Assembly: GCA_026770705.1 (NCBI GenBank)
Contig: JANJGN010000385.1
Coordinates: forward strand, 1-64,000
DNA from: Isurus oxyrinchus
Taxonomy: Eukaryota
Reading direction: 5' to 3'
Length of the DNA stretch: 64,000 nt
Part shown: one piece after another, positions 3,098 through 63,328 of the stretch
How the letters are laid out: each line of letters begins with the position of its first letter
Numbering within the stretch: position 1 is the stretch's first letter
The notes under the pieces: generated by a model
The model's database searches: none
Told to the model about the DNA's origin: nothing
What the model saw: the letters and a program-made list of their open reading frames with translations, nothing else
Position numbers and translations under genes: made by a program

Positions 3098-3346
3098 TCA
3101 GTTTTTCTGGAACCTGATCTGTGTGTATTCCGTGTCCTCGCTCCTGTGCACAGTCCTGTCACCGCCGGGCAGCTTTGAAAAGTTGATGTTGGCGTAGAAA
3201 AGCTCGTCGGGTTTGTCGGAGTTCCCATGTCCAACATCGCCTCCCACTGGACCTTCAGAGAGATCCCGGGGAGCTGGGGTCTCCCCCTCGCTAGTTGTGT
3301 CTCTGGTTGTGTTCCGGGGCTCAGTAATCAGCACGTTCTGTTTACC
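3098..3346 (-). CDS. Terminal cytoplasmic exon B (ITIM-like ELFYANINF plus TEYTQI)
   Basis: 249 bp open to stop; both tyrosine motifs match the CD33-related Siglec pattern ELxYAxLxF...TEYxxI. Confidence 0.82.
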   Translation of the reverse strand, partial: GKQNVLITEPRNTTRDTTSEGETPAPRDLSEGPVGGDVGHGNSDKPDELFYANINFSKLPGGDRTVHRSEDTEYTQIRFQKN

Positions 3347-5755
3347 CTACAGAGAAATGGAAACAGAAGACATCCTCACATCATTTACTGGCACTGATAG
3401 GGTTAAATTATTGTGCGGAGTCATTTAATTCTCTCTCTCCTACCGGATAAAAGAAACCACCTATGGCAGTGCAGCACTTCCTCAGTACTGACCCTCCAAC
3501 AGTGCAGCACTCCCTCAGTGCTGACCCTCCAACAGTGCAGCACTCCCTCAGTACTGACCCTCCAACAGTGCAGCACTCCCTCAGTACTGACCCGCTGTCA
3601 GTCCCGCACTCCCTCGGTAATGGCTCTGGTGAGTGACGGCTTGGATGCTGCACACAGGTGCCTGGTGTGAGGCTCAATAACATGAACCTTGTAATCAGAG
3701 AGAGGATGAGAGAGAGGGATAGAGGAGGGATAGAGACAGAGTGTTATGAATCTATTAATGTATGTAATGTAATTGCAAACTGTCTTTTTAAACAGAGGTT
3801 TAGTCTGTGTGTGTGTCTGTGTGTATTTTAATTGGATTAAAGCCAGCCAGTCTGGGTGCTTTGATGTATAGTAGTTTTGAGATGTAAACAAAGAGGTAAA
3901 GTGGTAATTTGCATTTTTAAATAAAACATTCAAAGTCTGAGAGTGAAATCTTAAACCAATCAACGTTTATATTACTAATAAAATTGATACGATGAAAGGG
4001 GATTTATTGTTAGAAGAGATGGAGTTCAAAGGTCCTGATGATACATTGCGAATTTACCTTCAAACAGAAGCCATAAGACTAAGACTTAGGATGAGTAATT
4101 AGACCATTCGGTCCATTTTCCCACCTTCTCCCCTAACCTTTGATCCCCTGACCAATCAGCAGCCTGTCAATCTCCATCTTCTTTACACTCAAGAGCTGGG
4201 TATAACTTGAGCAGTTTTGTTTGTGCAGAGCAGAGGCTTGTAACATCAAAGCAGCTGTAAGCCTACACCTGTCTGCAAAGGAACCAAAGTGAAAGGAAAC
4301 TCATTTGGAATTTGTGAGGTGAAAATGCTTTGCCTGGTGTCTGCTTAAAGACAATGGGTTGTCTTAGAGGAGATTAGTTTGAGAATTTGTTAAAAAGTTA
4401 TGATAATACTAGTTTGTAGCCATGTGCATATGTTTAACTTGTGTAAATTAATAAATGTTTCATGTAGTTTGATATAAAACCATCTTGAGAACTGGTGGTC
4501 TTATTCCTGAATTTAGAGTTGCATCTCAAACCTTCCACTGGGAAATATAGGTTATGACAGTTGTTTAAAGTTTCCTTCTGGGATTTTAAACAACAGCCTT
4601 TACCAGTTGCTGTATCATAACAGAGAGACAGCATGATACTGAACCATTGCTGACTCCACAGGTACAAATCAGTGGGTAACTGGGCAGGGAATCTGTGACA
4701 TGTGTTGTCTACACACTGAGATTGAAGCTTTGGAGTGAGTGTAAACAGCTCCTGTACCTGGTGCTTCACAGACAGTGAACTGGGGGTCAATGCAATGTCA
4801 CTGGTCCCTGAAACTCTCTCCTCCATCGCTGTCTTTCTCCTGCAATAACACAATATCACACTGTTGTTATCATATAGCAGAGAGTCAGTGCAGCACAGAC
4901 ACAGAGCCCACTGTAACCTTACACCAACGACTGGACTGTCTCTTTAAATCACTTCTGCACAAAGCACAGAATCAAGAAGCTTGACACCATCCAGGACAAA
5001 GCAGCCCGATTGATCTACACCCCATCCCCCACATTAAACATTCACTCCCTCCACCATGAACACACAGAGGCAGCAGTGTGTGTACCATCTACAAGATGCA
5101 CTGCAGCAACTCAGCAAGGCTCCTTCAACAGCACCTTCCAAACCCACGACCTCTACCATCTAGAAGGACAAGGGCAGCAGACACATGGGAACACCACCAC
5201 CTGGAAGTTCCCCTCCAAGTCACTCACCATCCTGACTTGGAAATATATCACCGTTCCTTCACTGTCGCTGGGTCAAAATCCTGGAGCTCCCCCCTAACAG
5301 CAGTGTGGGTGTACCTACACCACATGGACCGCAGCGGGTCAAGAAGGCAGCTCACCACACCTTCTCAAGGGCAATTAGGGATGGGCATTAATGCTGACAT
5401 CACCAGTGACAGCCACATTCGATGAAAGAATTTAAAATCTCACAGCTCAATGTATTTACTGTGATCCTGCTGCACACACGCCCTGTCGAAGGAGCCTTTG
5501 TGGTTCCATTGTTAATCGAAGCAGATCAGAGTTACTACAACTACTTGCATTTATATAGCACCTTCAATGTAGCAAAATGTCCCAAGGCTCATCCGGGGAT
5601 TGTTAGTCACATCTTCACCTGACTCTGAGGCACATGAGGAGATATTAGGGACAGGAGACCAACAGCTGAGTCAACAAAGTCAGTTATTAACGGGCATCTT
5701 AAAGGAGGAGCTGGAGATAGGGAATGAGAGACAGACACAGAAAGAAAGAGAGAGA

Positions 5756-5792
<37 letters not shown>

Positions 5793-8700
5793 TGAATCTC
5801 ACTCCCCAATGGCTCAGCATCCAGTCCTCTCTGGAGAAGCATTTCATTCCAAACCACACCAACCGCAGCCCAATTGCATCCCTTCCTCCCTCTCTCCCCC
5901 TCTCCCCCAGTGGGTTGTTTCCTGTTCCCAGGAATCTCAATCCCTACCCCCACACCCACACCTCCTCACTCACTCTCCCCATTTCTCATTCAGTTATGCT
6001 CGAACCTGATCTGTGCGTATTCCGTCTCCTCTTCCCTGTGGACAGAACCATCACCACTGGATATCCTCAAAACTTGGGGATTGGAGTAGAGAAGGGCAAC
6101 GGGATTGTCGGTGTGCCAATGTCCAGCATCGCCTCCCACTGGACCTTCAGAGAGACCCCGGGGAACTGGGGTCTCCCCCTCGCTAGTTGTGTCTCTGGTT
6201 GTGTTCTGGGACTCAGTAATCAGCACGTTCTGTTTACCCTACAGAGAAATGGAAACAGAAGACATCCTCACATCATTTACTGGCACTGATAGGGTTAAAT
6301 TATTGTGCAGCCTCGCTAGTGTCAGTCGGTCTCAATGGGTTTAACTCTCTCTCTCATGTCATCTGAAAGAAACCACCTACGGCAGTGCAGTGCTCCCTCA
6401 GTTCTGATCCCCCCCACTGTGCAGCACATCCTCAGTAGTGACCCTCTGTCAGTCTCGCACTCCCTCAGTGCTGACCCTCCGACAGTGCAGCACTCCCTTA
6501 GTACTGACCCTCCGGCAGTGCAGCACTCCCTCAGTACTGACCCTCTGTCAGTCTCGCACTCCCTCGGTAATGGCTCTGGTGAGTGATGGCTTGGATTCTG
6601 CACTCAAGTGTCTGGTGTGAGGCTCATTGACATCACCCTTGTAATCAGAGAGAGGATGAGAGACAGAAGAGAGAGAGAAAGAAAGGGAGGTAGGGATAGA
6701 GAGAGAGAATGTCATGATGCGATTAATGAATATCATGTTTTGGAAATTATTTTTATTAAAATAGTGGTTTAGTCTGTGGGTGTGTGTGTGTGTGTTTTAA
6801 TTGGATTAAAGCCAGCCAGTCTGGGTACTTTGATGTATCGTAGTTTTGAGATGTAAACAGGGAGGCAAAGAGACAATTTGTATTTTTGAACAGCGCAATG
6901 TCTGGGGGTGAAATCTTAAACCAATCAACGTTTATAATACGAATAAAATTGATACTATGAAAGGGGATTTATTATTAGAAGAAATGGAGTTCAAAGGTCC
7001 TGATGATACAATGAGAACTTACATTCAAAGAGAAGAGCTGGGTATAACTTGAGCAGTTTTGTGTGTGCAGAGCAGAGGCTTGTAACAGCAAAGCAGCTGT
7101 AAGCCTACACCTGTCTGCAAAGGAACCAAAGTGAAAGGAACCTCATTTGGAATTTGTGAGGTGAAAATGCTTTGCCTGGAATCTGCTTAAATTCTATGGG
7201 TTATCTTAGAGGAGATTAGTTAGAGAATTTGTTAAAAAGTTATGATAATACTAGTTTGTAGCCATGTGCATATGTTTAACTTGTGTAAATTAATAAATGT
7301 CTCATGTAGTTTGATATAAAACCATCCCGAGAACTGATGGTCTTATTCCTGAATCTAAAGCTGCATCTCAAACATTCCACTGGGAAATATAGGTTATGAC
7401 AGTTGTTTAAAGTTTCCTTCTGGGATTTTAAACAACAGCCTTTACCAGTTGCTGTGTCATAACAGAGAGGCAGCGTGATACTGAACCATTGCTGACTCCA
7501 CAGGTACAAATCAGTGGGTAACTGGGCTGGGAATCTGGGACATGTGTTGTCTACACACTAAGATTGAAGCTTTGGAGTGAGTGTAAACAGCTCCTGTACC
7601 TGGCGCTTCACAGAGAGTGGACTGGGGGTCAATGCAATGTCACTGGTCCCTGAAACTCTCTCCTCCATCGCTGTCTTTCTCCTGCAATAACACAATATCA
7701 CACTGTGGTTATCATATAGCAGAGAGTCAGTGCAGCACAGACACAGAGCCCACTGTAACCTTACACCAATGACAGGGACTGTCTCTTTAAATCACTTCTG
7801 CACAAAGCACAGAATCAAGAAGCTTGACACCATCCAGGAGAAAGCAGCCCGATTGATCTACACCCCATCCCCCACATTAAACATTCACTCCCTCCACCAT
7901 GAACACACAGTGGAAGCAGTGTGTGTACCATCTACAAGATGCACTGCAGCAACTCAGCAAGGCTCCTTCAACAGCACCTTCCAAACCCACGACCTCTACC
8001 ATCTAGAAGGACAAGGGCAGCAGACACATGGGAACACCACCACCTGGAAGTTGCCCTCCAAGTCACTCACCATCCTGACTTGGAAATATATCACCGTTCC
8101 TTCACTGTCGCTGGGTCAAAATCCTGGAACTCCCTCTCTAACAGCACTGTGGGTGTACCTACACCTCATGGACTGCAGCGGGTCAAGAAGGCAGCTCACT
8201 ACCTCCTTCTCAAGGGGCAATTAGAGATGGGCAATTAATAGCGGCCTCACCAGTGACAGCCACATTCGAAGAAAGAATTAAAAATCTCACAGCTCAGGAG
8301 GAAGCCACTCAGCCCATCGTGCCTGTGCTGGCCCTTTGTAAAAACTGTCTAATTAGTCCTCAACAAATGTTTATATTAAAATCAAGTTAAATCTTCAGAC
8401 TTACTTTCTCACACAGATGAAGATGAAGATTCCAGCCAGGAAAACACTCAACATGATCCCAGCCGTGAACAATCCTACTGTCCATTTACTAGAGTCTCTA
8501 CCTGTAAAAACAGCCATTAATTACTGCACTACAGATTTACAATGATGCTCCGATGTATCTCGAGAAGCGATACACTCACTCAGTGTTTAAATACTCATTC
8601 TCGGGCAATGCTGACATTTATTGTCCATCCCTAGTTTCCCCTTGAGAAGGTGGTGGGGGGTCTTCCTCCTGAACCACTGGTTTGTCCCAAACTGGGAGAC

Positions 8701-11107
8701 CAGTTCAGAGGGCAGGTAAGAGTTAACCATGTTGGTGTCTGAGACTGGAGTCACATCCACATGCTTCCCTCCCTAAAGGGTATGTAGTCTCTACACATGT
8801 AACAACCAACCTCACTGAAATAATCGACTATCAGGTCATTATCACACGGTGGTTTGCGGGATCTTGCTGTGCACAAATCAGTACCTGTGTTTCCTACATT
8901 ACAACAGTGAGCTCACTTCGATAATGCTTCACTGGCTGTTGAATGTTTAGTAATTTCTAAGCAATTTATGAATACAGGTATTGCATTTCAACATGTAACA
9001 TTTATATATAATATTTATCAATTAAAGAATGAGAAGTTCAGCAATTAAAAGGGTTGTTCAGGACAGTTAGAGAGAGAAAGGTCGTCAAGTATGGAGATTG
9101 GAAACGAAGACCTGACAGCCTTGTCCTCACAACCATTGAAGGAGAAACTGAGAGCAAAAACAGAAAGGGAGAGGAAAAATTGGATGTGTGGATAACGTGG
9201 ACTGAGCGAGGACTGAAGAAAACTGGATTAAAAACAACACGATCCCAATGGCTCCACGGAGACCACGGAGACAACAAACAAACAAATGTATCTCCACACT
9301 CACATTCCACAGTGATGGTTATGAACCCCTCCACTGCTCCATGTTCATTCTCTGCCACACACTGATAGTCTCCAGTGTCCCTGGATGTAACGTGAGGAAT
9401 CACCAACCACAGCTCATTGTTGGAACTTGTTCTGTTCATTGGGACATTAAGATGTCGCCACGTCAGGTTAGAAGCTGGGAAGCTCTCGACAGAGCAGATT
9501 ATCACTGCAGAATTCCCCTCAATTATATTGATCGATGAAGCATTAATCATATCAAGAGAGGTAAATGAGAGATTCTGTGGTGCATCTAAAAACAAATCAA
9601 GTGTTTAATGTGAGCAAGCACAATTTACAGCAAGACTCCATGCATCATCTCTCTGTATCTGATGTCTGTATGCAATTCCGGGTACCTTCCCTCCATATAA
9701 CTTCCACTGTCAAATTTATAATGGGCACTGCCTATGTAAACAGTCAAACTGGAGTTACATTCTCCCACCAGTAGAGGTGCTGTCCACTTTTAATGAAAGA
9801 AGCTTTCACATCCTCAGTATTTTGCCAAGGGATTTACGGGAATGAATTGTATTTGATCGATGGAGCACTGAGGGATAAATCTACAATTCTCTGTTCAGGA
9901 GGTTGCTCCATCCAATTCAGGGTCTTGCTGATCTGGAGTTTACCTTCCTTCAACACAGAATCGGAGCTGACACCGAGACTCCAGTGCAGCACTGAGAGAG
10001 GACAGGGAACTCATTTGTGTGTTTGTGTATGTGTTTGTGTTTCTGCACAAGTGAGAGTGTTTGTGTGAGTATGCATGCATGTGTCTGTGTGTGCATGTGT
10101 GTATGTGTTTGAGCATATCTGAGTGTCTCTTTGTGTATATTTCTGTGCATGAGTGAATGTGTGTGCATGTTTATGAGTATGTGTGTGCACGTGTGTGTAT
10201 GTGTGTGTGTGTGTGTGAGTGATGTTGAAGTTTGCAGTAACTCACGTTCCACAGTGATGGTTATGAACCCCTCCACTGCTCCATGTTCATTCTCTGCCAC
10301 ACACTGATAGTCTCCAGTGTCCCTGGATGTAACGTGAGGAATCACCAACCACAGCTCATTGTTGGAATTTGTTCTGTTCATTGGGACATTAAGATGTCGC
10401 CACGTCAGGTTAGAAGCTGGGAAGCTCTCGACAGAGCAGATTATCACTGCAGAATTCCCCTCAATTACATCGATCGATAAAGCGTTAATCACACCAAGAG
10501 AAGTAATTGAGAGATTCCGTGGTGCATCTATAAACATAGAATGATTTTAATATGAGCAAATATAGTGCACAGCAAGACTCCATGCATCATGTCTCTGTAT
10601 CTGATGTCTGAATGCATTTCCAGGTACCTTCTCTCAGGATAAGAACTTATTTCACATTTACAATGGGCACTGCCTATGTAAACTGTCACACTGCAGTTAC
10701 ATTCTCCCACCAGTGGAGGTGTCCATCTAGAATGCAGCAAACTCCCTTACAGATCCTCAAGCTGTCCCCAAAGGCTTCAAAGGCAATGAATTGTATTTGA
10801 TTGATGGAACACTGAGAGGTAAATCTACAATTCACTGTTCAGGAGGTTGCTCCATCCAATTCAGGGTCTTGATGATCTGGAGTTTACCTTCCTTCAACAC
10901 AGATTCGGAGCTGATATCGAGACTCCAGTGCAGCACTGGGAGAGGAGAGGGAACCCACATGTTTTTGTGTGTGTATGTGTGTGTTGGCTTGTGTGTGCAT
11001 GTTTCGGTACAATAAGGATGTGTGTTTGTGTTTGTGTGTGTGCACATGTGTGTCTGTATGGGCATGTGTGTGTGTGCTTGTATGAGTTGAGATTGTGTGT
11101 GTTTCTG

Positions 11108-11146: not shown

Positions 11147-13906
11147 TGTTGAAGTTTGCATTAACTCACATTCCACAGTGATGGTTATGAACCCCTCAAT
11201 TATATTGATCAATGAAGCATTAATCATATCAAGCGAAGTAAATGAGAGATTCTGTGGTGCATCTAAGAACAGTTAAAGATTTCATTGTGAACAAGACTCA
11301 GTACTGAGGGAGTGCTGCAGTGTTGGAGAATCAGTATTCAGGGACTGCTGCAGTGTCAGAGGTGAATTTGTATCAGTTAAAGACTATTGATTTGTTGCTA
11401 AACACAATGCAATTGTGGGATCTTGCAATGTACTAAGTAGAGCTTTCTAGCTAATGTAGAATGAAGGGTGTCCGTTCTTACCTTGCACAGTTAGTACGAG
11501 GGTCTGCTCTGCTGAAACAGATGGATATCTCACTCTGCAGCTGAGTGTGTGTCCATGGTGTTTGAGTGATGGGATCAGGGTCAGAACAGAAGTATAGGTC
11601 AGAGTGACACCATGCTGAGTTACAGTGTTTGAGACTGATCCACGTACGTCAGTGGGAATGTCCCAGGTTAAGACAGGTGCTGCTGTTCCATTGCACATTG
11701 TGTTGAAGGTGCAGCTTACATCCACACGCTTTCCTGCAATAATTTCAGCAGGGAATATCGTGGGTTTATCTGTGAAATCTAACAGACAGAGAATGGATCC
11801 TTTTAGACAAATATAACGTGAAGCATCAGTTCAACTAGAAACCACAGTCCCACAAGAGAAAGCACTTTAACAAGGATGATATCAGATCTGAGAGGTTACA
11901 ATGATCAGGAAAGATTTTCTTGCTCTTTGGCAGTAGTGTTTCTGTCTCTCAGCTTAATACACGTTCACTCCGAGACATGTGAATTGAGAACACTGGATGA
12001 GAGAAGAGGCTGAGACCAGAGATTGGAGTTAAAAGCAGAATACTGCGGATGCTGGAAATCTGAAACAAAAACAAAAATTGCTGGAAAGACTCAGCAGGTC
12101 TGACAGTATCAGTGGAGAGGAAGACAGGGTTAACGTTTCGAGTCTGTATGACTCTTCATCAGACCAGAGGTTTGAGTTCACTGGCTTCTCATTTCCTCAG
12201 TGATCTGGGTTATTTATCACCTTGTGGTTTGTTGGATCTTGCTGTGCACAAACTGCCTGCTGTGTTTTACATCTGTGACTACAATTCAGGAATAATTTCA
12301 TTGGCTGTGAAGGGATTTGGATCCTCCTGAGGTGGTAAATTGCGCTGCAGAAATGCACATCTTTCTTTTATCGATACGTCAGACTTTTAAACAGGACAGG
12401 AGAGATTGATGGGTGTGGATAACCTGATAATACAGTTAATGCTTTTCATCATTGATATTAAAGTGAGTATTGGAGGTTGCTTTAGGACTGAACTGGAAGC
12501 TATCACCAGGTTATTGAGAATCAGACAGTGTGTTATAATAAGCTTTGTTTTATTTTAATATGTGAACGTCACAGTTTGTGTTATTTCCCATTGAGAGTTG
12601 AATGTGAATTGTTGAGTAATTATAACACAGCACTTACCAGAAACATGAAGCTGGGTTACAGGGTAATAGTTATAGCTCGGACCATTGTCAAATTCTATTC
12701 TGAAAAAATAAGGTCCTGCATCTTCCCGTGTGATGTTGTTTATAATCAGGGAACAGTCGCCATCTTTCAGGTCTCCAGACAGCCGGGTCCGATGGCGGAA
12801 CCGTGGTAACTCGTGACTGTGATCCTTGGAGTGAAAGGCAATAGGAGCCCAGGGAATCTGTTTCTCATTATTAAACCAGACTCCACCTCGCGGTTGATTT
12901 TCCAAATGTGATGGATAACTGTAATGACATGGAATCTGTACACACGAACCTTCCTGCGCTGTCACCTCTCGTGGAGTGTCACCTTTCCACTCTTGTGACA
13001 GTCCAACTGGGGAGAGAAATATCAATATTTAACTCCGAATGGTTTGTAGATCCACTAGACTCGATATCCACCCCCTCCATCTCTGGAGCACAGTGGCTGC
13101 AGTGAGGACCATCTACAGGACACACATGGAACTCCCCAAGGTTTCATAATGGATGGAAGAGAATCCTGGACACAGGAGTGGACAAGTTCATTCTACATTG
13201 GCTCATGGTCCTCAGGACCCTGTTTAGTGAAGCCAGTCTTCCACCCAACGCAGTGTCTACAAGACACACAGGGAAACTGTGTAAATATCTCATCTCTCTA
13301 AACTGACTGCTTTGGCTTCGGTTTAACTTTCAGTTATTTTACTTCCTTATTGTGTTGCTATGGTGAAACTGTGCAGGAAGTGCGAGGGCTGGACTCTCTG
13401 TCTATTCTGACTGCAGCTGTGATGTAGTCGTGGTGGTTTTCAGTAAAATGAAACCCTCTGAGCTCCTCCATCGCCGAGGTTTAGGGAGTGAATTCCAGAG
13501 CTCAGGCCCCAGGCAGCTGAAGGCCCAGCCGCCAGTATTGGAGTGATGGGAATCGAGGGATGGTCAAGAGGCCGGAATTGGAGTAACACAGAGATCTGGG
13601 ACGTTGGTTGGGAGAGTTGCAGGAGGTTACAGAGATAAGGACGCAGTGTGAGGCAATGGATGCATTTGAACAAAGAGATGTGAATTTTAAGTTTGAGATG
13701 TTGTAGGACCAGGAGTCAGATAGTTTAGGGGTGATGGGTGAATGGGACTTGGTGTGAGTTTGTACACTGGCTCACTGTTGAATCGGTTCCCAATCACAGC
13801 TCCATAAGAATGTTCTTTTACAAAGACTATTCACCATAAATCTGTCCGAGCTGACGATGATATTACCTTGGAGAAGTGACAGGAGGAAGTAAGATTTCCC
13901 GATCAT
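3098..13906 (-). CDS. Gene 1: inhibitory-type Siglec-like receptor (spliced; about 622 aa with mini-exon and one tail cassette)
   Basis: Exons on minus strand: leader 13867-13906, V-set 12638-13006, C2 11482-11778, mini-exon 11170-11262, C2 10246-10527, C2 9304-9585, TM 8405-8501, then tail A (7600-7681, 6560-6637, 5990-6238) or tail B (4758-4839, 3610-3687, 3098-3346). All have AG/GT ends and compatible phases (1,1,1,1,1,1,2,0,0). Confidence 0.85.
3465..3618. repeat. Short 33-bp minisatellite (duplicate at about 6380-6568)
   Basis: Same unit, abutting cytoplasmic exon 2. Confidence 0.85.
3610..3687 (-). CDS. Cytoplasmic exon 2, cassette B
   Basis: Duplicate of 6560-6637, [26 protein letters not shown]. 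Confidence 0.5.
3742..4622. mobile_element. Solo-LTR-like element (copy in cassette B)
   Basis: TGTTATGA...TCATAACA termini, near-TSD cagag/gagag; duplicated at 6710-7464. Confidence 0.55.
4758..4839 (-). CDS. Cytoplasmic exon 1, cassette B
   Basis: Near-identical duplicate of 7600-7681 with intact splice sites. Confidence 0.7.
4970..5430 (+). mobile_element. LINE 3'-end fragment
   Basis: Reverse-complement homology to the LINE at about 830-1330; duplicated at about 7812-8280. Confidence 0.65.
5745..5789. repeat. (GA)n microsatellite
   Basis: Read directly. Confidence 0.9.
5990..6238 (-). CDS. Terminal cytoplasmic exon A (LLYSNP, TEYAQI motifs)
   Basis: ctctgtag|GGT AAA CAG...; open to stop; distal TxYxxI motif like the TEYSEI motif of CD33-related Siglecs. 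Confidence 0.8.
   Translation of the reverse strand, partial: GKQNVLITESQNTTRDTTSEGETPVPRGLSEGPVGGDAGHWHTDNPVALLYSNPQVLRISSGDGSVHREEETEYAQIRFEHN
6560..6637 (-). CDS. Cytoplasmic exon 2, cassette A
   Basis: 78 bp, phase 0-0, [26 protein letters not shown]; weak donor gtgcga. Confidence 0.55.
6710..7464. mobile_element. Solo-LTR-like element (copy in cassette A)
   Basis: TGTCATGA...TCATAACA; paralog of 3742-4622. Confidence 0.55.
7600..7681 (-). CDS. Cytoplasmic exon 1, cassette A
   Basis: ttgcag|G AGA AAG...CAG|gtacag; [27 protein letters not shown]; phase 2-0 matches the TM exon. Confidence 0.78.
7812..8280 (+). mobile_element. LINE 3'-end fragment
   Basis: [15 protein letters not shown]-terminal LINE-like peptide plus 3' UTR. 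Confidence 0.65.
8405..8501 (-). CDS. Gene 1 transmembrane exon (uncharged)
   Basis: tttttacag|...|gtaagt; encodes [33 protein letters not shown]; phase 1 in, phase 2 out. Confidence 0.88.
9304..9585 (-). CDS. Gene 1 C2-set Ig exon (copy c)
   Basis: 282 bp, near-identical to 10246-10527, canonical splice sites. Confidence 0.88.
10246..10527 (-). CDS. Gene 1 C2-set Ig exon (copy b)
   Basis: 282 bp, APRNLS...[15 protein letters not shown]...[14 protein letters not shown]; tag| and |gtgagt sites. Confidence 0.88.
10960..11145. repeat. (GT)n-rich microsatellite (paralog at about 10015-10220)
   Basis: Read directly. Confidence 0.9.
11170..11262 (-). CDS. Gene 1 internally deleted Ig mini-exon (31 codons)
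   Basis: Copy of the 282-bp C2 exon lacking 189 bp between two GAGGGG repeats; splice sites intact, frame kept. Confidence 0.55.
11482..11778 (-). CDS. Gene 1 first C2-set Ig exon
   Basis: 297 bp, DFTDKPTIF...[19 protein letters not shown]...LSCRV; carries the extra Cys typical of Siglec domain 2. Confidence 0.9.
12128..12165 (-). ncRNA. Minimal hammerhead-ribozyme-like motif in a Penelope-like fragment (gene 1 intron, sense)
   Basis: GGT-CTGATGA-A-GAGTC(ATACA)GACTC-GAAA-CGTT-A-ACC. Confidence 0.45.
12638..13006 (-). CDS. Gene 1 Siglec-type V-set Ig exon
   Basis: 369 bp, cag|...|gtaagt. Motifs [18 protein letters not shown] and [11 protein letters not shown] give the Siglec B-E disulfide pattern, no F-strand Cys, and the essential Arg. 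Confidence 0.93.
13867..13906 (-). CDS. Gene 1 signal-peptide exon [13 protein letters not shown]
   Basis: ATG plus 13 codons plus phase-1 donor CAAG|gtaata; joins the V exon as ...LLQ-VGLSQEW. Homologous exon recurs at four other places in the window. Confidence 0.85.
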
Positions 13907-17713: not shown

Positions 17714-17853
17714 TCAAACAGTCTGTCGACTTCCTTTCACTGTTTTTCTCTCCCAGACACAGACTCCAGCGATAGTGATAACCACAGCCACAAGGAATAT
17801 CACAGCTCGTATTCCCAGGATCAGGATCACGTGCAGAATCTCTTCTCCACTGT
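17714..17853 (-). CDS. Activating-type TM/short-tail exon (gene 2)
   Basis: ttctctag|AC AGT...TGA; DSGEEILHVILILGIRAVIFLVAVVITIAGVCVWERKTVKGSRQTV*; Arg in the membrane segment, no Tyr in the tail. Confidence 0.85.
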
Positions 17854-20800
17854 CTAGAGAACACACAGAAAGAAATCATCTCCGCTTTCAATCTCTCACT
17901 CTGGCTGAACAATCAAGCTTCATATCACTGCAACATTTGCTGTATTATTGACCCATCCACTGGGATTCAATGTGGAATGAATGTTTTCATTGTAAACACT
18001 CTAAGAGTGGACAATCGGAACTTTCCCCTTAGCGTGGAACATTGGTGAGAATGGATCATTGTGCTGTTGGACTCCCTGTCCAATTTTTCTCTCCATCGCT
18101 GTGTACAGGATTGTGTTGTAGAAAATTCTGGAAACGTTTAGTGCAGGGTGGAAATCCATCTCGGACGCGTGTGCGAATCGGGCAGGATCGAGATGGCCTC
18201 CCCAACAGACTTACACCCCCCGCTTAATAAACAGTTCCAATCTTTACCCAGAGAGAGGGGAGAATGTGGAACTCGCTCCCACAGGGAGTGGTCGAGGTGA
18301 ATAGTAGCAAATTAGGAAGGGAAATTGCTTGAAAAGCTTGGGGATGCAAGGGTTAAGTGTGACCGTGCCACCACTGGTGGGAGAGTGTAACTACAGCGTG
18401 ACGTTTACATAGGCAATCCCCATTATGAACATGGACATCATGTGAAAAATGGGCACTGGAAAGCTGAGAACATGATCTAAGCTTTTCAACAACAGGAATT
18501 CCCTTCCTAAACCTCTCCACCTCTCTCTTACTCTCAGATACTCAAACAAAATTTCACACAAAATCATGTAAGAGGAGTTAGGACAGGTGACTCGTCAAAG
18601 GATTAGGTTTCAGGAAACTTCTTAAAGGAGGATAGAGAGTTGGAGAGGCAGAGTGTATCTGTGAGTATCTCTGTGCATCTGAGTATCTCTGTGCATCTGA
18701 GTGTCTGTAATAGACCTTGCAATTTCCATATTCTTCCATAAATATGAAAGGGAACACAAAACCCAGAATCGAGGTCAATAGTCCGGTGCAGCACTGAGGG
18801 AGGTCAGGTAACCCACAGGGCAGTATGTGATAGGGTGTTTGTTTGTGAGTGTGTCTTTGTGTGTACTCATACATGTGGGATTGTGTGTCTGCAGGTGTCT
18901 GCTTAGGTCTGTATATTTGTGTGTATTTGTGTAGTGTTTGAACCTGAGAGTGATGTTGAAGTCTGTGTAACTCACGTTCCACAGTGATGGTTATGGACAC
19001 CTCCACTGCTCCATGTTCATTCTCTGCCACACACTGATAGTCTCCAGTGTCCCTGGATGTAACGTGAGGAATCACCAACCACAGCTCGTTGTTGGAACTT
19101 GTTCTGTTCATTGTGACATTGAGATGTCAGGGCAGGACTCAACAAGACAGCTCGCAGGTTTACCAACAGAAAATGAACAACAATTTATATTTAAAGGGAA
19201 GAGAGTGCTGATTGGTTGGCAAGTGGTCTCTGATTAGAGGAGGTGTTGCCATGGAAAATAACGTGTGCAAGCTGTAAAGTTTAGACAGCTTGTCACTTCA
19301 TTCAGCAATAATCAATTAAAGATCAGTTAACTTCTATCGACTGTGAAGCACTTTGAGTGGCCTGAGAATATGGATACTGAGAATGGGCTGCACTGTCAGA
19401 GGGTCAGCGCTGAGGGAGTGCTGATGTAGAATGAAGGGTGTCCGTACTTACCTTGCACAGTTAGTACGAGGGTCCGCTCCGATGAAACAGATGGATATCT
19501 CACTCTGCAGCTGAGATTGTGTCCGTGGTGTTTGAGTGATGGGATCAGGGTCAGAACAGAAGTATAGGTCAGAGTGACACCATGCTGAGTTACAGTGTTT
19601 GAGACTGATCCAGGTACGTCAGTGGGAGTGTCCCAGGTTAAGACAGGTGCTGCTGTTCCATTGCACGTTGTGTTGAAGGTGCAGCTTACATCCACACGCT
19701 TTCCTGCAATAATTTCAGCAGGGAATATCGTGGGTTTATCTGTGAAATCTAACAGACAGAGAATGGATCCTTTTAGAGAAATATAACGTGAAGCATCAGT
19801 TCAAATAGAAATCACAGTCCCACAAAAGAAAGCACTTTTACAAGGATGATATCAGATCTGAGAGGTTACAACGATCAGGAGAGAATTTCCTGCTTTGAGA
19901 CTTTGGTGTTTCTGTCTCTCAGCTTAATATACGTTCACTCCGAGAAACTTGAACTGATAATAGTGGGTGAGGGTGGAGGAGCAGACCAGAGTTTGGAGTG
20001 CACTACCCCATCATTCACTCAGCGATCTGGGCCATTTGTTACCTGTCAATTGTGGGAGCTTGCTGTGCGCAAATTGGTTGTTGTGTTTCCCACATTACAA
20101 CAGTAACTACAATTCAGGAATCAGCTCATTGGCTGTGAAATGATTTGGTCTGTGCTGAGGTGGTGAAAGGTGCTACAGAAATGTGAATCATTCTTCTGTC
20201 GATATGTCAGACTTCGAGACAGGATTAGAGAGATTGATGGGAGTGGATAACCTGATAACATTGATGGACACAGTCAATACATTTAATCATTGATATTAAA
20301 CGTGATTATTAGAGTTTGCTTTTGGACTGAACTGGAAGCTATCACCAGGTTACCAGGTTGCATGTTAACTCAAAATTAAGAATCTAAATGGTCTAGAGGA
20401 GCATAGAACAATAGATTATATTTATATAGTGCCTATATTGTAATATAACATGCCAAGGTGCTCCACAGGAGCATTATAATAGAAAGTATGGTCCCACGCC
20501 ATATAAGGAGATATTAGGTCAGATAATCAGAACTTTGGTTGAAGAGGTGGGTTTTAAGGAGCACCTTAAAGGAGGAGATAGAAAGATGAAAGGATTTAAG
20601 TCTCAGGACCCAGGCTACTGAAGGCTTGGCCGTCCATGCTGGAGCGATGGAAATCAGGGATGCTGAAGAGTCCAGAGGTAGAGGAGTGCAGAAATCTGGG
20701 AAGGCTGTCGCACAGGAGGAGATTACAGAGATAGGGAGGAAGCAAGGACGAGCATTTTGAAATCAAGACATTGCTTGTCCAGGAGCCATTCAAGGTCAGA

Positions 20801-44500: not shown

Positions 44501-46425
44501 CAGCAGCAACTTTCCTATTTTCAAACTTGGTGGGGAATGTGTCACTGAGCTGAATACACTTTCACTCCCAGACCCTTGAATTGCCAACACTGGGGTGTGG
44601 GTGATGGAGCAGTCCACAGCTCATGGAACCCTGGCTCATCATTCTCTCAGAGATCTGGGTCACTGATCCCATTGCTCTCTGTGGGAGCTTCCTGTGAACA
44701 AACTCACTGCCACGTTAGACAGTGACTATACTTCAAGAATTTCTTCATTGTCTGTGAAATGATTTGAAGTTTGCTGAGGTGGTGTAAGGCGCTATAGGAA
44801 TGCACATCCTTCTTTTGTCAAATTGTTAGACATTTAAAAAGCATTAGGTAGACTGATGGGAGTGGATAACCTGATAACATTGATGGACACAGTCAATACA
44901 TTTAATCATTGATATTAAAGTGAGTATTAGAGGTTGCTTAAGGACTGAACTGGAAGCTATTAGCAGGTTATTGAGAATCAGACAGTGTGTTATAATAAAC
45001 TGTGTTTTGTGTTAATATGTAAACGTCACAGTTTGTGTTATTTCCCATTGAGTGTTGGATGTGAATTGTTGAGTAATTATAACACAGCACTTACCAGAAA
45101 TGTGAAACTGGGTTACAGGATAGTAGTTGTAGTTATTTGTACTTCCAAATTCTATTCTGAAAAAATAAGGTCCTGCATCTTCCCATCTGATGTTGTTTAT
45201 AATCAGGGAACGGTCGCCATCTTTCAGGTCTCCAGACAGCCGGGTCCGATGGTGGAACCGTGGTAACTCGTGACTGTGATCCTTGGAGTGAAAGGCAAAG
45301 GGATTGTCGAATTTGTGTTTCTCGTTATTAAACCAGATTCCGACTCGTGGTTGGCTTTCCAAATGTGCTGGATAACTGTAATGACATGGAATCTGTACAC
45401 ACGAACCTTCCTGCGCTGTCACTTCTCGTGGAGTGTCACCTTTCCACTCTTGTGACAGTCCAACTGGGGAGAGAAATATCTCTATTTAATTCTGGATCCT
45501 CAATGTCAACTGAATCTTCATTGTCACTTCATTGTCTAAGGAATCTCTTTGGATCCTCAATGTCTAAGGGATTATTTCTGATCCAAACCCCATATTGTTG
45601 TATTGTTGATTCCAATGCAGCATTGTAGACTGACTTGTCCCCAAGCTCAGCACTGACCCTACTCCAGCAGACACTGTGAAACACACTAACAAAGTGCCTC
45701 TAGCCTGAGCTCTGCATGTGTCGAGAGAAAGACAAATATACAAACTGAATATTGACACCTTTACACACGGACAGCTTTACCTTCCTTCTCTCTTTCAGTT
45801 ATCTTGCTCCCTTATTGAAGTTTCTAGCAAGGTGAGAATGGACAGGAAGTGGGACACTGAACAGCCTGTCTATTCTAGGAGCTGCTGTGTTGTCTTCATG
45901 GGAAATTCTGACTAAAATCAGCAAAAGACACTAATTTCAGGCCATTGCTGTCAGAGTCTCAGCATCAAGATAGACTTCATCCCCTGAATTTTGTGTTTGA
46001 TTTTCTACTCAAACTTTCACCTCCCCAAACCTCCACCCCGACCCCACAAGTCACTCGCTGACCTACACTGGCTCCCAGTCCAACAATGCCTCGATGTGAT
46101 TATTTTCACACTTGATTTCCAATCCCTCCATCACTCCGCTCCACTTCCTATCTCTGTAACCCCCTCCAAACCTACAACCCTCTGAGATCTCTGCACTCCT
46201 CCAATTCTGCTGTCAGACAGGGAGTCAGTGTATATCAGTGAGCACAGGGGTGATGGGTGAATGGGACTTGGTGTGAGTTTGTACACTGGCTCACTGCTGA
46301 ATCAGTTCCCTATCACAGCTCAATAAGAATGGTCTTTTACAAAGACTATTAACCATAAATCTGTCCAAGCTGACGATGATATTACCTTGGAGAAGTGACA
46401 GGAGGAAGTAAGATTTCCCGATCAT
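38460..46425 (-). CDS. Gene 4: activating-type Siglec-like receptor L-V-C2-C2-TM(Arg), about 375 aa
   Basis: Exons 46386-46425, 45095-45463, 43483-43779, 40305-40586, 38460-38599 sum to 1128 nt, open to TAA; TM ILHVILILGIRAVIFLVAVVITIAGVCVW. Confidence 0.85.
40305..40586 (-). CDS. Gene 4 second C2-set exon
   Basis: 282 bp, complete with both Cys. Confidence 0.88.
40720..41030. repeat. 33-bp minisatellite
   Basis: Same unit. Confidence 0.85.
41040..41286 (+). mobile_element. Short solo-LTR-like element
   Basis: TGTTATG start, AATAAA, ends ...CATCA; local similarity to the LTR-like sequence at about 50630. Confidence 0.35.
41290..41500. mobile_element. Inverted (palindromic) Penelope-like terminal repeat pair
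   Basis: Arms ctcaacaggtctggcagcatcgg...gagtcctcatgacc and ggtcatgaggactc...ccgatgctgccagacctgctgag around a 15-nt spacer. Confidence 0.55.
41560..43310 (+). mobile_element. Degenerate CR1 LINE in a gene 4 intron
   Basis: NWGKANF, VPEDWRMANVVP...NYRPVSLTSVVGK, GVPQGSVLG motifs across broken ORFs. Confidence 0.9.
43483..43779 (-). CDS. Gene 4 first C2-set exon
   Basis: 297 bp, canonical splice sites. Confidence 0.88.
45095..45463 (-). CDS. Gene 4 V-set exon
   Basis: 369 bp; YFFR kept; DCSL changed to DRSL. Confidence 0.88.
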
Positions 46426-54647: not shown

Positions 54648-57600
54648 ATGGAATATCTGGGAGTGGACGATGGTCAGGAAATCTTACTCCTGTCACTTCT
54701 CCAAGGTAATATCATCATCAGCTCGGACAGATTTATGTTTAACAGTCTTTGTAAAAGATCATTCTTATCTCTTTATCTCTGTAACCTCCTGCAACTCACC
54801 CAAACAACTTCCCAGATCTCTGTGTTACTCCAATTCCGGCCTCTTGACCATCCCCCGATTCCCATCACTCCAATACTGGCGGCCGGGCCTTCAGCTGCCT
54901 GGGGCCTGAGCTCTGGAATTCACTCCCTAAACCTCGGGGATGGAGGAGCTCAGAGGGTTTCATTTTACTGAGAATCACCACGACCACATCACAGCTGCAG
55001 TCAGAATAGACAGAGAGTCCAGCCCTCGCACTTCCTGCACAGTTTCACCATAGCAACCACAATATGGAAATTTAAAAATACTGAAAGTTAAACTGAAGCT
55101 CAAACCAGTCAGTGTAGAGAGATGAGATGTTTACACAGTTTCCCTGTGTATCTTGTAGACACTGTGTTGGGTGGAAGACTGGCTTCACTAAACAGGGTCC
55201 TGAGGACCATGAGCCAATGTAGAATGAACTTGTCCACTCCTGTGTCCAGGATTCTCTTCCCTCCGTTGTGAAACCTTGGGGAGTTCCTTGTGTGTCCTGT
55301 AGATGGTCCACACTGCAGCCACTGTGCCCCAGTGATGGAGAGGGTGGATATCGAGTCTAGTGGATCTACAAACCTTCCAGAGTTAAATATTGACATTTCT
55401 CTCCATATTTGGACTGTCACAAGATTGAAAAGGCGACACTTCACGAGAGGTGACAGCGCAGGATGGTTCGTGTGTACAGATTCCATGTCATTACAGTTAC
55501 TTATCAAATTTCATAGGGAGATCACGTGTCGGAATCTGCTTGAAAGGAATAGATGGGAACCCACAGCCGAAATGGTCTATAGCCTTTCATTCCGAGGGTC
55601 ACAGTCACAGGGATCAAAGATTCCACCATCGGACCCGGCTGTCTGGAGACCTGAAAGATGGCGACTTTTCCCTGATTATAAACAACATCAGACGGGAAGA
55701 TGCAGGACCTTATTTTTTCAGAATAGAATTTGACAATGGTCCGAGCCATAACTATTACCCTGTAACCCAGCTTCACGTTTCTGGTAAGTGCTGTGTTATA
55801 ATTACTCAACAATTCACATTCAACACTCAATGGGAAATAACACAATCTGTGACGTTTACATATTAACACAAAACACAGCTTATTATAACACACTGTCTGA
55901 TTCTCAATAACCTGGTGATAGCTTCCAGTTCAGTCCTAAAGCAACCTCTAATACTCACTTTAATATCAATGATGAAAAGCATTAACTGTATTATCAGGTT
56001 ATCCACACCCATCAATCTCTCCTGTCCTGTTTAAAAGTCTGACGTATCGATAAAAGAAAGATGTGCATTTCTGCAGCGCAATTTACCACCTCAGGAGGAT
56101 CCAAATCCCTTCACAGCCAATGAAATTATTCCTGAATTGTAGTCACAGATGTTAAACACAGCAGGCAGTTTGTGCACAGCAAGATCCAACAAACCACAAG
56201 GTGATAAATCACCTAGATCACTGAGGAAATGAGATGCCAGTGAACTCAAACCTCTGGTCTGATGAAGAGTCATACGGACTCGAAACGTTAACCCTGTCTT
56301 CCTCTCCACTGATACTGTCAGACCTGCTGAGTCTTTCCAGCAATTTTTGTTTTGGTTTCAGATTTCCAGCATCCGCAGTATTCTGCTTTTAACTCCAATC
56401 TCTGGTCTGAGCCTCTTCTCTCATCCAGTATTCTCAATTCACATGTCTCGGAGTGAACGTGTATTAAGCTGAGAGACAGAAACACTACTGCCAAAGAGCA
56501 AGAAAATCTTTCCTGATCATTGTAACCTCTCAGTTCTGATATCATCCTTGTAAAAGTGCTTTTTCTTGTGGGACTGTGATTTCTATTTGAACTGATGCTT
56601 CACGTTATATTTCTCTAAAAGGACCCATTCTCTGTCTGTTAGATTTCACAGATAAACCCATGATATTCCCTGCTGAAATTATTGCAGGAAAGCATGTGGA
56701 TGTAAGCTGCACCATCAACACAACGTGCAATGGAACAGCAGCGCCTGTCTTAACCTGGGACACTCCCACTGACGTACCTGGATCAGTCTCAAACACTGTA
56801 ACTCAGCATGGTGTCACTCTGACCTATACTTCTGTTCTGACCCTGATCCCATCACTCAAACACCACGGACACACACTCAGCTGCAGAGTGAGATATCCAT
56901 CTGTTTCATCGGAGCGGACCCTCGTACTAACTGTGCAAGGTAAGTACATACACCTTTCATTCTACATCAGCACTCCCTCAGCGCTGACCCTCTGACAGTG
57001 CAGCCCGTTCTCAGTGTCCACATTCTCAGACCTCTCAAAGTGCTTCACAGTCGATTGAAGTTAATTGATCTTTATTTGATTATTGCTGAATAAAGAGACA
57101 AGCTGTCTAAAGTTTACATCTCGCACACACCATTCTCCATGGCAACACGTCCACCTATCAGAGACCACTTGCCAACCAATCAGCACTCTCTTCCCATTAA
57201 GTATAAATTGTGGTTCACTTTCTGTTGGTAATCCTGCGAACGGGCTTTTTGATTCCTGCCCTGACATCTTAATGTCCAAATGAACAGAACAAGTTCCAAC
57301 AATGAGCTGTGGTTGGTGATTCCTCCCATTACATATCGGGACACTGGAGACTATCAGTGTGTGGCAGAGAATGAACATGGAGCAGTGGAGGGGTTCATAA
57401 CCATCACTGTGGAACGTGAGTGTACACAGACATCAACATCTCTCTTAGATTCAAACATTGCACAAACACACACAAATATACAGAACTAAATAGACACATG
57501 CAGACACACATGTATGAGCAATTACAAAGACACACTCACGAACAAACACACTAGCACACACTCCCCTGTGGCTTACCTGAGTACTGCACTGGAGAGTTGG

Positions 57601-59226
57601 CCTGGATTCTGGGATTTGTGTTCCCAATCATATTTATGGAAGAATATGGAAATTACAAAGTCTATTACAGACACTCAGATGCATAGAGACACTCACAGAT
57701 ACTCTCTGCCTCTCCAACTCTCTCTCTCCCTTTAAGAAGCTTCCTGAAAGCTAACCCTTCGAACAATCACCGGCCCCAACTCCTCCTTATCTGATTCTGT
57801 GTGATTTTGTTTGTGTATCTGAGAGTAAGAGAGAGGTGGAGAGGTTTAGTTAGAGAATTCCTGCTGGTGAAAATCTTACATCATTTACTCACCTTTCCAG
57901 TGCACATATTTCCCAGTATGTCCAATGCCCCTGTTGATAATGATGACTGCCTATGTAAACGTCACGCTGTAGTTACAGTCTCCCACCAGTGGTGGCATTG
58001 TAGCACTTAATCCTTGTGTTTCCCAGCTTTTCAAGCAACTCCACTTCCCAGTTTGCTACACAAGCTGTGAGTTCATCAGAATTAAATTATTTCTCAAATG
58101 ATAGATTTGATAATTCATTTTATTGAAAACTTCCTCAGCGCCTCCCTGAAGGGTCTACACTCTCTGGGAAGCAGGAATAGGCTGGATGTTGGGGAGTTCA
58201 TCTTTTCCCAGAGAGTAGGGATCCTTGAGAATGTGCTGTCAGTGGGTGTGGTAGTTCCGGTTTCTCTGTCGCCTTCAAGAGGGATCTGGAGTGGTTACTG
58301 ACTGGGGGAGAGATCATGGAAGCGGAGAATGATACAGCACAGGAGGAGGCCATTCAGCCCATTGTGCCTGTGCCAGGTCTTTCAATGTTCTATCCAATCA
58401 GATCCACTAACCACCACTCCACTTTACCCCATCTTCCTCCTTCAAGTGTTTATCCAATTTCCCTTTTGAAAGTTCCTATTGAATCTGCTTCCACCGCCCT
58501 TTCAGGCAGCACCTTCCAGATCACAACAACTCGCTCTGTCAAAACAAATTCTCCTCATCTCCCCCTCCAGTTGGTCAATCTGTGTCCCTCTGGTTACCAA
58601 CCCTCCTGCCCCTTAAATACATCGATACTGTTCACCTCAACCACTCCCTGTGGGAGTGAGTTCCACATTCTCCCCTCTCTCTGGGTAAAGATTGGAACTG
58701 TTTATTAAGCGGGGGGTGTAAGTCCGTGGGGGAGTCCATCTCGATCCTGCCCGATTCGCACACGCATCCGAGATGGATTTCCACCCTGCACTAAACGTTT
58801 CCAGAATTTTCTACAGCACAATCCTGTACACAGCGATGGAGAGAAACATTGGACAGGGAGTCCAACATCACAATGATCCATTCTCACCAATGTTCCACGC
58901 TAAGGGGAAAGTTCCGATTGTCCACTCTTAGAGTGTTTACAATGAAAACATTCATTCCACATTGAATCCCAGTGGATGGGTCAATATTACAGCAAATGTT
59001 GCAGTGATATGAAGCTTGATTGTTCAGCCAGAGTGAGAGATTGAAAGCGGAGAGTCAGTGATGATTTCTTTCTGTGTGTTCTCTAGACAGTGGAGGAGAG
59101 ATTCTGCACGTGATCCTGATCCTGGGAATACGAGCTGTGCTATTCCTTGTGGCTGTGGTTATCACTATCGCTGGAGTCTGTGTCTGGGAGAGACAAACAG
59201 TGAAAGGAAGTCGACAGACTGTTTGA
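54648..59226 (+). pseudogene. Gene 5: activating-type Siglec-like gene with disabled V exon
   Basis: Leader 54670-54705 has a 4-bp deletion. V 55409-55783 has acceptor cag>tat and TGA at 55426-55428. C2 56643-56939 is intact. Half-exon remnant at 57265-57415. TM(Arg) 59087-59226 is intact. Confidence 0.8.
56256..56293 (+). ncRNA. Minimal hammerhead-ribozyme-like motif (gene 5 intron, sense)
   Basis: GGT-CTGATGA-A-GAGTC(ATACG)GACTC-GAAA-CGTT-A-ACC. Confidence 0.45.
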
Positions 59227-62697: not shown

Positions 62698-62717
62698 CAC
62701 TTCCTCATTTTGTCTCA
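62698..62717 (+). promoter_or_regulatory. PU.1/ETS site upstream of gene 6
   Basis: cacttcctcattttgtctca. Confidence 0.5.
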
Positions 62718-63288
62718 CAGTGACACATCCACCCTTTCTAATTAAACACACAGAGGGAGCAGCACAGGAAGAGGTCATTCAGCTCAAGCAGAGCGTGTGG
62801 GCAGTTCCTCCCCAGGCGAGCAGTCGGACAGGTCCTGGGTAAGTAACGGAACGATTGGAATTCACTTCCACCACCAACACCGTCCTTTGTTGATGTTGTG
62901 ACTTTATAAAGACAGATTCCAATGATTGATGCCTTTGAAAGATTTCTACTGGTTATTGAGATCTGGGTGTGAGACTCAAGTCTGTTGTACAGAACATCTT
63001 TCTAGCTCAAGGGATGAGGGAAGTGCAGAGACATGAGCTTTGGGACGTCTTGAGGTGGTGAAAGGTGCTATAGAAATGCAAATCCTTTAATGTTTTTCTT
63101 TCTTAAAGTCTTGTAACTCTCTGCAGAGCACCTATCATCCCACAGAGAATCAAATTAGTCTGTAAAGACATTGTCCAAAAACAGTTCTGATCTCTTGAGA
63201 GCTGTCGGACAAGAGGTGAGGTCTCATTAACTCCTTTCTCTTTCAGAGTTTGAGAGTCAGAAGCTTATGAAGTATCTGGGAGTGGACA

Positions 63289-63328
63289 ATGATCGGGAAA
63301 TCCTACTTCCTCCTGTCACTTCTCGAAG
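63289..63328 (+). CDS. Gene 6 signal-peptide exon [13 protein letters not shown] (gene continues beyond the window)
   Basis: ATG...GAAG|gtaata, preceded by the conserved promoter block. Confidence 0.8.

Follow-up and report, generated by a model that had tools for sequence, protein, structure and literature searches.

Siglecs with inhibitory tails and their partners with a charged transmembrane (TM) residue are textbook regulators of mammalian innate immunity, and the CD33-related group is usually portrayed as fast-evolving and largely mammalian. The cytoplasmic tail of CD33-related Siglecs has the layout LxYAxL...TEYSE(V/I), and two members of the family, Siglec-5 and Siglec-14, show near-identity through gene conversion. 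We analyzed a 64,000-nucleotide stretch of the shark Isurus oxyrinchus (GenBank assembly GCA_026770705.1, contig JANJGN010000385.1, positions 1 to 64,000 of the forward strand; hereafter the window), in which tblastn with the window's own immunoglobulin (Ig) open reading frames (ORFs) and self-blastn identified a tandem cluster of five homologous Siglec-type gene units, A to E. The locus as a whole is probably best explained as a duplicated shark Siglec cluster with two kinds of membrane module: one with an inhibitory-type tail, and one, hereafter TM(Arg), with an arginine within the membrane segment and a short tail.

The cluster shares several features with Siglec-5/14 and Siglec-11/16, namely an Arg-bearing V-set domain followed by C2-set domains, a partner with an ITIM (immunoreceptor tyrosine-based inhibitory motif) plus an ITIM-like or immunoreceptor tyrosine-based switch motif (ITSM), a second partner whose TM segment contains a basic residue and whose tail is short, and a tandem arrangement; Siglec-5 is also the best match in the PDB. 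However, the shark genes differ from the Siglec-5/14 pair in that the identity between activating-type and inhibitory V domains is only 80-83%. At the protein level, the V domain of unit B is 80% and that of unit D, the closest, 83% identical to gene A, whereas unit C, which is 96% identical, lacks a TM exon; near-identity between partners would be reached only if unit C is read through into unit B. The shark TM(Arg) module also differs in being a separate, highly conserved single exon common to many paralogs, and several of the units are broken.

A two-Ig V-C2 ectodomain is common to CD33-related Siglecs, to units of the B and E type and to the RefSeq models of sharks, and the tail of gene A resembles that of CD33-related Siglecs in having an ITIM (LFYANINF) in proximal and a TEYxxI motif in distal position. 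The likeness to MAG (Siglec-4) includes the V-domain match, and several shark and gar relatives are named "MAG-like" in RefSeq. Whereas MAG is a single conserved five-Ig gene, the shark genes form a multigene tandem family with two to four Ig domains and either ITIM/ITSM or TM-Arg ends.

The shark Siglec family is not new to databases, being present by automatic annotation in many elasmobranch genomes. RefSeq Siglec-like proteins of elasmobranchs share with the window the leader, the V domain, the first C2 domain, the TM(Arg) exon and the two types of tail; examples are two CD33-like proteins of Carcharodon carcharias (XP_041037179, here P0013, and P0186) and "Siglec-14 isoform X2" of Scyliorhinus canicula (P0189). 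These models are automatic, with mammalian names borrowed by similarity, and the copies in the window differ from them by their lesions. In a literature search on Siglecs in sharks, cartilaginous fish and elasmobranchs, we found no study of the shark family, beyond a brief mention in the paper on the genome of the whale shark. According to a publication on teleost species, in which cartilaginous fish are not mentioned, CD33-related Siglecs are missing from fish genomes (PMC7226832). A large family in elasmobranchs with the same V-domain hallmarks, two-motif tail and TM Arg would imply that this design is either as old as jawed vertebrates or reinvented, and the family could serve as a tractable system for the wiring of sialic-acid self-recognition before bony vertebrates. 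What the window itself contributes is the anatomy of turnover: an intact inhibitory-type gene whose tail cassette is duplicated, a pseudogene, a copy that lacks a conserved cysteine and a probable fusion of units C and B.

Unit structure and Siglec family membership

All five units follow one plan, with phase-1 exons throughout: a leader exon, a V-set exon, one or more C2-set exons and one of the two membrane modules, which are interchangeable. Units A, B, C and D lie on the minus strand, and unit E lies on the plus strand. Canonical splice sites and phases are present in every exon of gene A and in the first C2-set (C2a) and TM(Arg) exons of units B, D and E.

Pfam assigned the V exons to V-set and Ig_CD22, C2a to C2-set_2 and the further C2 exons (C2b and C2c) to Ig_3/I-set. 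In a phmmer search of the PDB, the V exon of gene A matched Siglec-5, MAG, Siglec-7, Siglec-8, CD33, Siglec-10 and sialoadhesin (E 3e-15 to 6e-12). Siglec-15 and pIgR followed as the next group, at ~3e-7; MAG is an equal-best match of this domain, at 59 bits. Using a catshark V-C2a-TM(Arg) homolog as the query, we obtained the following PDB bit scores.

Siglec-5: 102 bits
CD33: 95 bits
MAG: 87 bits
Siglec-10: 84 bits
Siglec-8: 83 bits
Siglec-15: 45 bits
CD22: 44 bits

These scores set Siglec-15 and CD22 clearly farther away and leave MAG inseparable from the CD33-related group; the scores of CD33 (95 bits) and MAG (87 bits) are close and do not imply orthology to CD33. When the V exon of gene A was modelled with AlphaFold (predicted local distance difference test score of 72, from a shallow alignment), a Foldseek search with the model returned only Siglecs, down to rank 25.

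Residue-level alignments gave the same family. On the F-strand, GPYFFRIE of gene A aligns to GSYFFRVE of Siglec-5 and to GKYYFRGD of MAG. The V-domain cysteines align to Siglec-5 at the two cysteines of EGSCVQIPC and at DGDCSL, which falls on KKNCSL, and VSCTFNTTCNG of C2a also aligns to Siglec-5 cysteines. The full Siglec cysteine pattern, which consists of the B-E intrasheet pair and the extra V and C2 cysteines, is present in units A, B and C only; the conserved E-strand Cys is lost in two of the five V exons (replaced by Arg in unit D and by Phe in unit E). The YFFR motif is present in all five V exons (at ~12.7k, 21.5k, 33.6k and 45.2k on the minus strand and at 55.7k on the plus strand), and its Arg is invariant in every shark homolog that we aligned. 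The sequence-only reading, made without database searches, had described Siglec-type V domains that keep this Arg, and the best PDB matches are indeed all Siglecs. The assignment of the units to the Siglec family, as putative members of the CD33-related/MAG branch, is well supported.

Gene A

Gene A is the sole clearly intact unit in the window. It corresponds to the one gene for which an uncharged TM segment and an ITIM/ITSM tail had been proposed, and both features were found (LFYANI and TEYTQI). The exons of gene A, in transcript order, are as follows.

13867..13906, minus strand: leader exon, with a phase-1 donor; the same leader occurs in RefSeq shark Siglec-like proteins
12638..13006, minus strand: V-set exon of 369 nt, intact, with the Siglec cysteine pattern and the YFFR Arg
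11482..11778, minus strand: C2a, the first C2-set exon, with the extra Cys expected for a V-C2 interdomain bond
11170..11262, minus strand: candidate mini-exon of 93 nt, in frame, with splice sites and phase kept
10246..10527, minus strand: C2b exon of Ig_3/I-set type
9304..9585, minus strand: C2c exon, a tandem duplicate of C2b
8405..8501, minus strand: uncharged TM exon with ag/gt sites
7600..7681, minus strand: proximal mid-cytoplasmic exon, matching RefSeq models P0013/P0006
5990..6238, minus strand: proximal terminal exon with LLYSNP (not an ITIM), TEYAQI (ITSM) and a stop
4758..4839, minus strand: distal mid-cytoplasmic exon, a duplicate of the proximal one
3098..3346, minus strand: distal terminal exon with LFYANI (ITIM consensus), TEYTQI (ITSM consensus) and a stop

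The 93-nt mini-exon is a C2 exon minus its middle 189 nt. Within the distal terminal exon, ELFYANI lies at 3205..3185 and TEYTQI at 3133..3116, both on the minus strand. The cytoplasmic part of the gene (3066-8296) consists of two tandem copies of a two-exon cassette, each with a mid-cytoplasmic and a terminal exon, and the duplicated blocks are 80% and 96% identical. RefSeq models of great white shark and basking shark include both types of tail, so both cassettes of gene A are probably used. A search of the ESM Atlas with a gene A cytoplasmic exon returned nothing informative.

TM(Arg) exons and their splicing

The second membrane module occurs in three exons of the window.

17714..17853, minus strand: TM(Arg) exon of unit B, with a 12-aa Tyr-free tail and a stop
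38460..38599, minus strand: TM(Arg) exon of unit D, 140 nt
59087..59226, plus strand: TM(Arg) exon of unit E, encoding ILILGIRAVLF

All three exons are 140 nt long, are entered in phase 1 and follow the acceptor ttctctag/ACAGTG (here and below, a slash marks an exon boundary). The encoded product is SG(E/G)EILHVILILGIRAV(I/L)FLVAVVITIAGVCVWER(K/Q)TVKGSRQTV followed by a stop, with ILILGIRAV(I/L)F as the membrane core. The peptide ILGIRA is encoded three times, at 17821..17804 and 38567..38550 on the minus strand and at 59119..59136 on the plus strand. The Arg lies about one-third of the way into the helix as counted from outside, and the tail of 12 residues contains no Tyr. Three TM exons with a membrane Arg and a Tyr-free tail of about 12 aa had been described in the sequence-only reading, and our analysis confirmed them to the base; the peptides were missing from its ORF list because the exon is only 46 codons long. 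The three exons are evidently homologous duplicates and not chance matches.

Evidence that TM(Arg) exons are spliced to Ig exons came from contigs of four runs (X1, X5, X6 and X7), which we aligned to the unit D region (38400-44000). A joint between C2a and TM(Arg), connecting 43486 to 38601 with one letter between, was present in X1, X6 and X7, runs that carry two organism codes and belong to three studies. On the minus strand, the joint reads ...GTGC-AAG/ACAGTGG, which corresponds to the end of C2a (in its CAAG form) followed by the first TM(Arg) base, with C2b skipped. The same junction is present in RefSeq models of four sharks, so splicing of TM(Arg) exons to Ig exons, which had been presumed from the letters of the window, is borne out both in the contigs and in the models. 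Contigs of X6 and X7 agreed with the C2a exon of unit D without a single mismatch, over 269 nt and 101 nt, respectively.

Run X1 also contained a joint between C2a and a C2b-type exon (43486 to 40588) and an unspliced sequence (38591-38900) with 0 mismatches. In X5, one contig of 674 letters links 40457..40306, the 3' half of C2b, to 38599..38439, which includes TM(Arg). The ends of this contig match the homology boundaries between units D and E exactly, so it derives from an E-like copy. We read it as a partly processed or aberrant transcript, because the truncated C2b exons have no usable in-frame acceptor.

Units B and C

Unit B lies between gene A and unit C. The V, C2a and TM exons of unit B and their splice sites are intact.

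21471..21839, minus strand: unit B V exon, intact, with a divergent C-C' loop (MRRDKW)
19452..19748, minus strand: unit B C2a exon
18976..19126, minus strand: unit B C2b remnant, 5'-truncated, with an intact donor and no usable in-frame acceptor
34779..34818, minus strand: unit C leader exon
33548..33916, minus strand: unit C V exon, intact, 97.5% identical to that of gene A in nucleotides and 96% in amino acids
32392..32688, minus strand: unit C C2a exon
30001..30590, minus strand: segment at the C/B junction, resembling the leader-to-V intron (intron 1) of a following gene

We found no leader exon for unit B: a blastn search of the window with the leader region returned five copies only (A, C, D, E and the sixth, F), and a scan of 21.85-24.5 kb for an ATG followed by a hydrophobic stretch gave nothing credible. 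Upstream of unit B, homology to the other units ends at 22081. Conversely, tblastn and blastn searches of the window identified no TM exon for unit C, and the homology of unit C to units D and E ends at 30585, just 5' of the place expected for this exon. The segment at 30001-30590 matches leader-to-V introns, with 92% identity to 63997-63408 and 82% identity to 45747-46303. Because the 3' homology of unit C ends where this intron-1-like sequence begins (30585-30590), the sequence suggests that a deletion took out both the TM exon of unit C and the leader of the next gene, B, and thereby joined C to B. A long interspersed nuclear element (LINE) with a reverse-transcriptase domain, at 27.4-29.5 kb, lies inside the resulting C-B interval of ~10 kb.

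Since all exons are phase 1, read-through from unit C into unit B would keep the frame, and unit C could be read through into B in this way. Unit B can apparently be expressed only through such read-through. In units B, C and E, a 5'-truncated remnant is all that is present of the third Ig exon (C2b). As candidate in-frame acceptors for these remnants we found only weak internal AG dinucleotides that lack a pyrimidine tract, and we rejected them.

Units D and E

The remaining two units are damaged to different degrees, and their exons besides TM(Arg) are as follows.

46386..46425, minus strand: unit D leader exon, intact
45095..45463, minus strand: unit D V exon, with an open frame and the E-strand Cys changed to Arg (DGDRSL)
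43483..43779, minus strand: unit D C2a exon, with a weakened donor (CTAC/gtaagt)
40305..40586, minus strand: unit D full C2b exon, with Ig_3/I-set homology
54670..54705, plus strand: unit E leader exon, with a 4-bp deletion and loss of the frame and hydrophobic core
55409..55783, plus strand: unit E V pseudo-exon, with the acceptor AG lost (ccccag to ccatat), a TGA at codon 8 and the E-strand Cys changed to Phe
56643..56939, plus strand: unit E C2a exon

In unit D, the frames are open in all five exons (leader, V, C2a, C2b and TM). The C2a donor is CAAG/gtaag in units A, B, C and E, whereas it is CTAC/gtaagt in unit D. Unit E is a pseudogene.

Relatives in other elasmobranchs

Homology searches identified RefSeq models of elasmobranchs as the close relatives of the window's units; among the matches listed, the best identity was 92%, to great white shark. 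The cartilaginous-fish origin that the sequence-only reading had considered probable agrees with these matches, and the 92% identity points to a shark related to great white shark and probably lamniform. The relatives come from the genera Carcharodon, Cetorhinus, Rhincodon, Scyliorhinus (two species), Mustelus, Chiloscyllium, Stegostoma, Hemiscyllium, Heterodontus, Heptranchias, Pristiophorus, Pristis, Hypanus, Hemitrygon, Mobula, Amblyraja, Leucoraja, Rhinoraja and Narcine, and their automatic RefSeq names are Siglec-5/7/8/10/11/12/13/14/16, CD33-like or MAG-like. Besides elasmobranch proteins, the matches listed came from a few ray-finned fishes; the nearest of these were MAG-like, CD22-like and Siglec-6-like proteins of gar, paddlefish, sturgeon and arowana, with 37-42% identity.

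The C2a-TM(Arg) junction is present in models of Carcharodon, S. canicula, S. torazame and Chiloscyllium punctatum, with LGIRA invariant, and the TM(Arg) cassette is thus common to lamniform, carcharhiniform and orectolobiform sharks. The TM(Arg) models of Carcharodon have the arrangements V-C2a-TM and V-V-C2a-TM. A region-restricted search for TM(Arg) found it, within the length range of that search, in Carcharodon and Scyliorhinus only, a result that does not rule it absent elsewhere.

Many of the shark and ray RefSeq models contain two to four tandem V-sets before the C2 domain (P0004-P0008, P0168 and P0172). The V domains in second position in these models often have an extra Cys (SYPSC). 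If tandem-V Siglecs are real, we know of no mammalian counterpart.

Sequence turnover within the cluster

Units A and C form a duplicated block of ~7 kb that is ~95% identical, introns included. The V exons of A and C are 97.5% identical, whereas those of all other pairs are 82-89% identical, with ratios of nonsynonymous to synonymous substitution rates (dN/dS) of 0.6-1.15. Differences among the V domains are concentrated at residues 33-56, in the C-C' region, and at residues 105-112; in Siglec-7, the C-C' loop determines glycan specificity. Among the five units, C2a exons share 96-99% identity, compared with 82-90% for introns and V exons, which points to possible homogenization by gene conversion or to strong constraint. 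On the explanation that we prefer, the cluster is made up of recent duplicates, is part of a larger one and is evidently in the birth-and-death turnover typical of such families.

Proposed function and alternative explanations

By analogy with CD33-related Siglecs, the module of gene A, with its uncharged TM segment and its LFYANI/TEYTQI tail, would recruit SHP-type phosphatases and damp signalling. By analogy with Siglec-14/15/16 and with further paired receptors, the TM(Arg) helix with its Tyr-free tail would dock an adaptor that carries a TM Asp and an ITAM (immunoreceptor tyrosine-based activation motif), and would activate the cell. The F-strand Arg of the V domain would bind the carboxylate of sialic acid, and the variation in the C-C' loop would correspond to that of the specificity loop of mammalian Siglecs. 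On these analogies we infer sialic-acid binding, inhibitory and activating signalling, and the use of adaptors.

Several observations weigh against this overall explanation of the cluster. All three TM(Arg) units in the window carry a defect or miss an exon. At the joints in the contigs, C2a ends in its CAAG form, which is that of units A, B, C and E, and not in the CTAC of unit D; moreover, the short side of each joint spans only 21-30 letters of sequence common to the paralogs, so the joints show a family-level splice that is assignable neither to one unit nor to this window. The RNA nature of the runs is a guess, for which the joints themselves are the evidence. In the X5 contig, one nucleotide is deleted at 38570, within the coding part of TM(Arg), so at least one transcribed TM(Arg) copy, in a contig of another individual or species, is frameshifted. 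A 2014 survey reported no homolog of FcR-gamma in the shark genomes then available (PMC4016189). The paired cluster that had been read from the sequence alone accordingly stands in part: ITIM/ITSM and TM(Arg) modules coexist in the window, but no TM(Arg) unit is cleanly intact, as unit E is a pseudogene, unit D has lost a Cys and unit B is leaderless.

It is possible, if somewhat unlikely, that only gene A works at this locus, with the three TM(Arg) units being decaying relics of duplication and any activating receptors of this shark encoded by other members of the family. Decay of this kind would fit the condition of unit E (4-bp leader deletion, lost V acceptor, in-frame TGA and Cys-to-Phe change) and of unit D (E-strand Cys-to-Arg change and weakened C2a donor), the lack of a leader exon for unit B in the window, the 5' truncation of C2b in units B, C and E, and the frameshift in the TM exon of one transcribed copy in X5. 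However, it fits less well with unit B, whose V, C2a and TM exons and splice sites are all intact, or with unit D, whose frames are open in five exons and whose C2a is exactly matched over 269 nt and 101 nt. The joint between C2a and TM(Arg) is the exact junction of the B and E type, and because all exons are phase 1, unit C would be able to give unit B a leader. A quite improbable alternative concerns the ligand: the units could be Siglec homologs by descent that do not sense sialic acid, with the V domain re-used for another ligand and the YFFR Arg having a structural role. The fast evolution of the V exons (dN/dS up to 1.15) is consistent with such re-use, and some mammalian Siglecs lack the Arg or bind non-sialylated ligands. 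Yet all five V exons and every aligned shark homolog retain the Arg unchanged, the entire F-strand motif aligns with Siglec-5, CD33 and MAG, and the variation falls in the C-C' loop, as would be expected when glycan specificity is tuned.

We also think it very unlikely that the TM(Arg) form is a tail-less decoy or competitor, or a form retained in the endoplasmic reticulum, that modulates the availability of ligand for the inhibitory form. The TM(Arg) tail contains no signalling motif, and FcR-gamma was not found in sharks in 2014 (PMC4016189), both of which would suit a receptor of this kind. An Arg buried in a hydrophobic helix is costly unless paired, however, and this one is invariant across lamniform, carcharhiniform and orectolobiform sharks. 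Sharks also possess CD3-zeta-family chains, which speaks against the decoy explanation.

The explanation that we prefer, a duplicated shark cluster with inhibitory-tail and TM(Arg) modules, can be extended by two linked readings whose joint truth we regard as unlikely: that units C and B encode a fused activating receptor, and that the shark genes correspond, in cartilaginous fish, to the CD33-related Siglecs. Under the fusion, unit C (leader-V-C2a) and unit B (V-C2a-TM-Arg) would act as one transcription unit for an activating receptor with two V domains and four Ig domains in total. The tip of this receptor would then match that of the inhibitory gene A (96%), and a true pair would have been made by exon capture. 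If the shark family is the CD33-related counterpart, an ITIM and ITSM tail with a charged-TM partner would predate the split between cartilaginous and bony vertebrates, which would contradict the published view of fish as lacking CD33-related Siglecs (PMC7226832).

Sixth gene, exon ends and repeats

At the far end of the window, the leader exon of a further gene was identified.

63289..63328, plus strand: leader exon of a sixth gene, which continues past the window end

Repeats aside, the Siglec-like units are the sole protein-coding genes that we identified within the window, the sequence of which contains zero N. All peptides quoted in the sequence-only reading were found where it had placed them, and the positions that it named are exact exon ends: the stop codon of gene A ends at 3098, two TM(Arg) exons have their stops at 17714 and 38460, the third TM(Arg) exon opens with base 59087, and the sixth leader exon ends with base 63328.

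The repeats are of a vertebrate type and include LINE reverse-transcriptase fragments, retroelement ORFs and arrays of a 33-bp minisatellite. The 33-bp minisatellites (9-50 copies) are intergenic and lie 5' of each leader exon, at 14715-16369, 35628-37114, 47237-47942 and 60662-62470; the arrays yield long stop-free ORFs on both strands, and such ORFs are not genes. Upstream of unit E, a tandem array of 43/87/130-bp repeats occupies ~1.07 kb (52918-53985). Microsatellites rich in (GT/CA)n immediately follow C2b-type exons at 9950-10240, 18578-18970 and 40051-40300, and they are the source of the THTHTH and CVCVCV ORFs in the ORF list.

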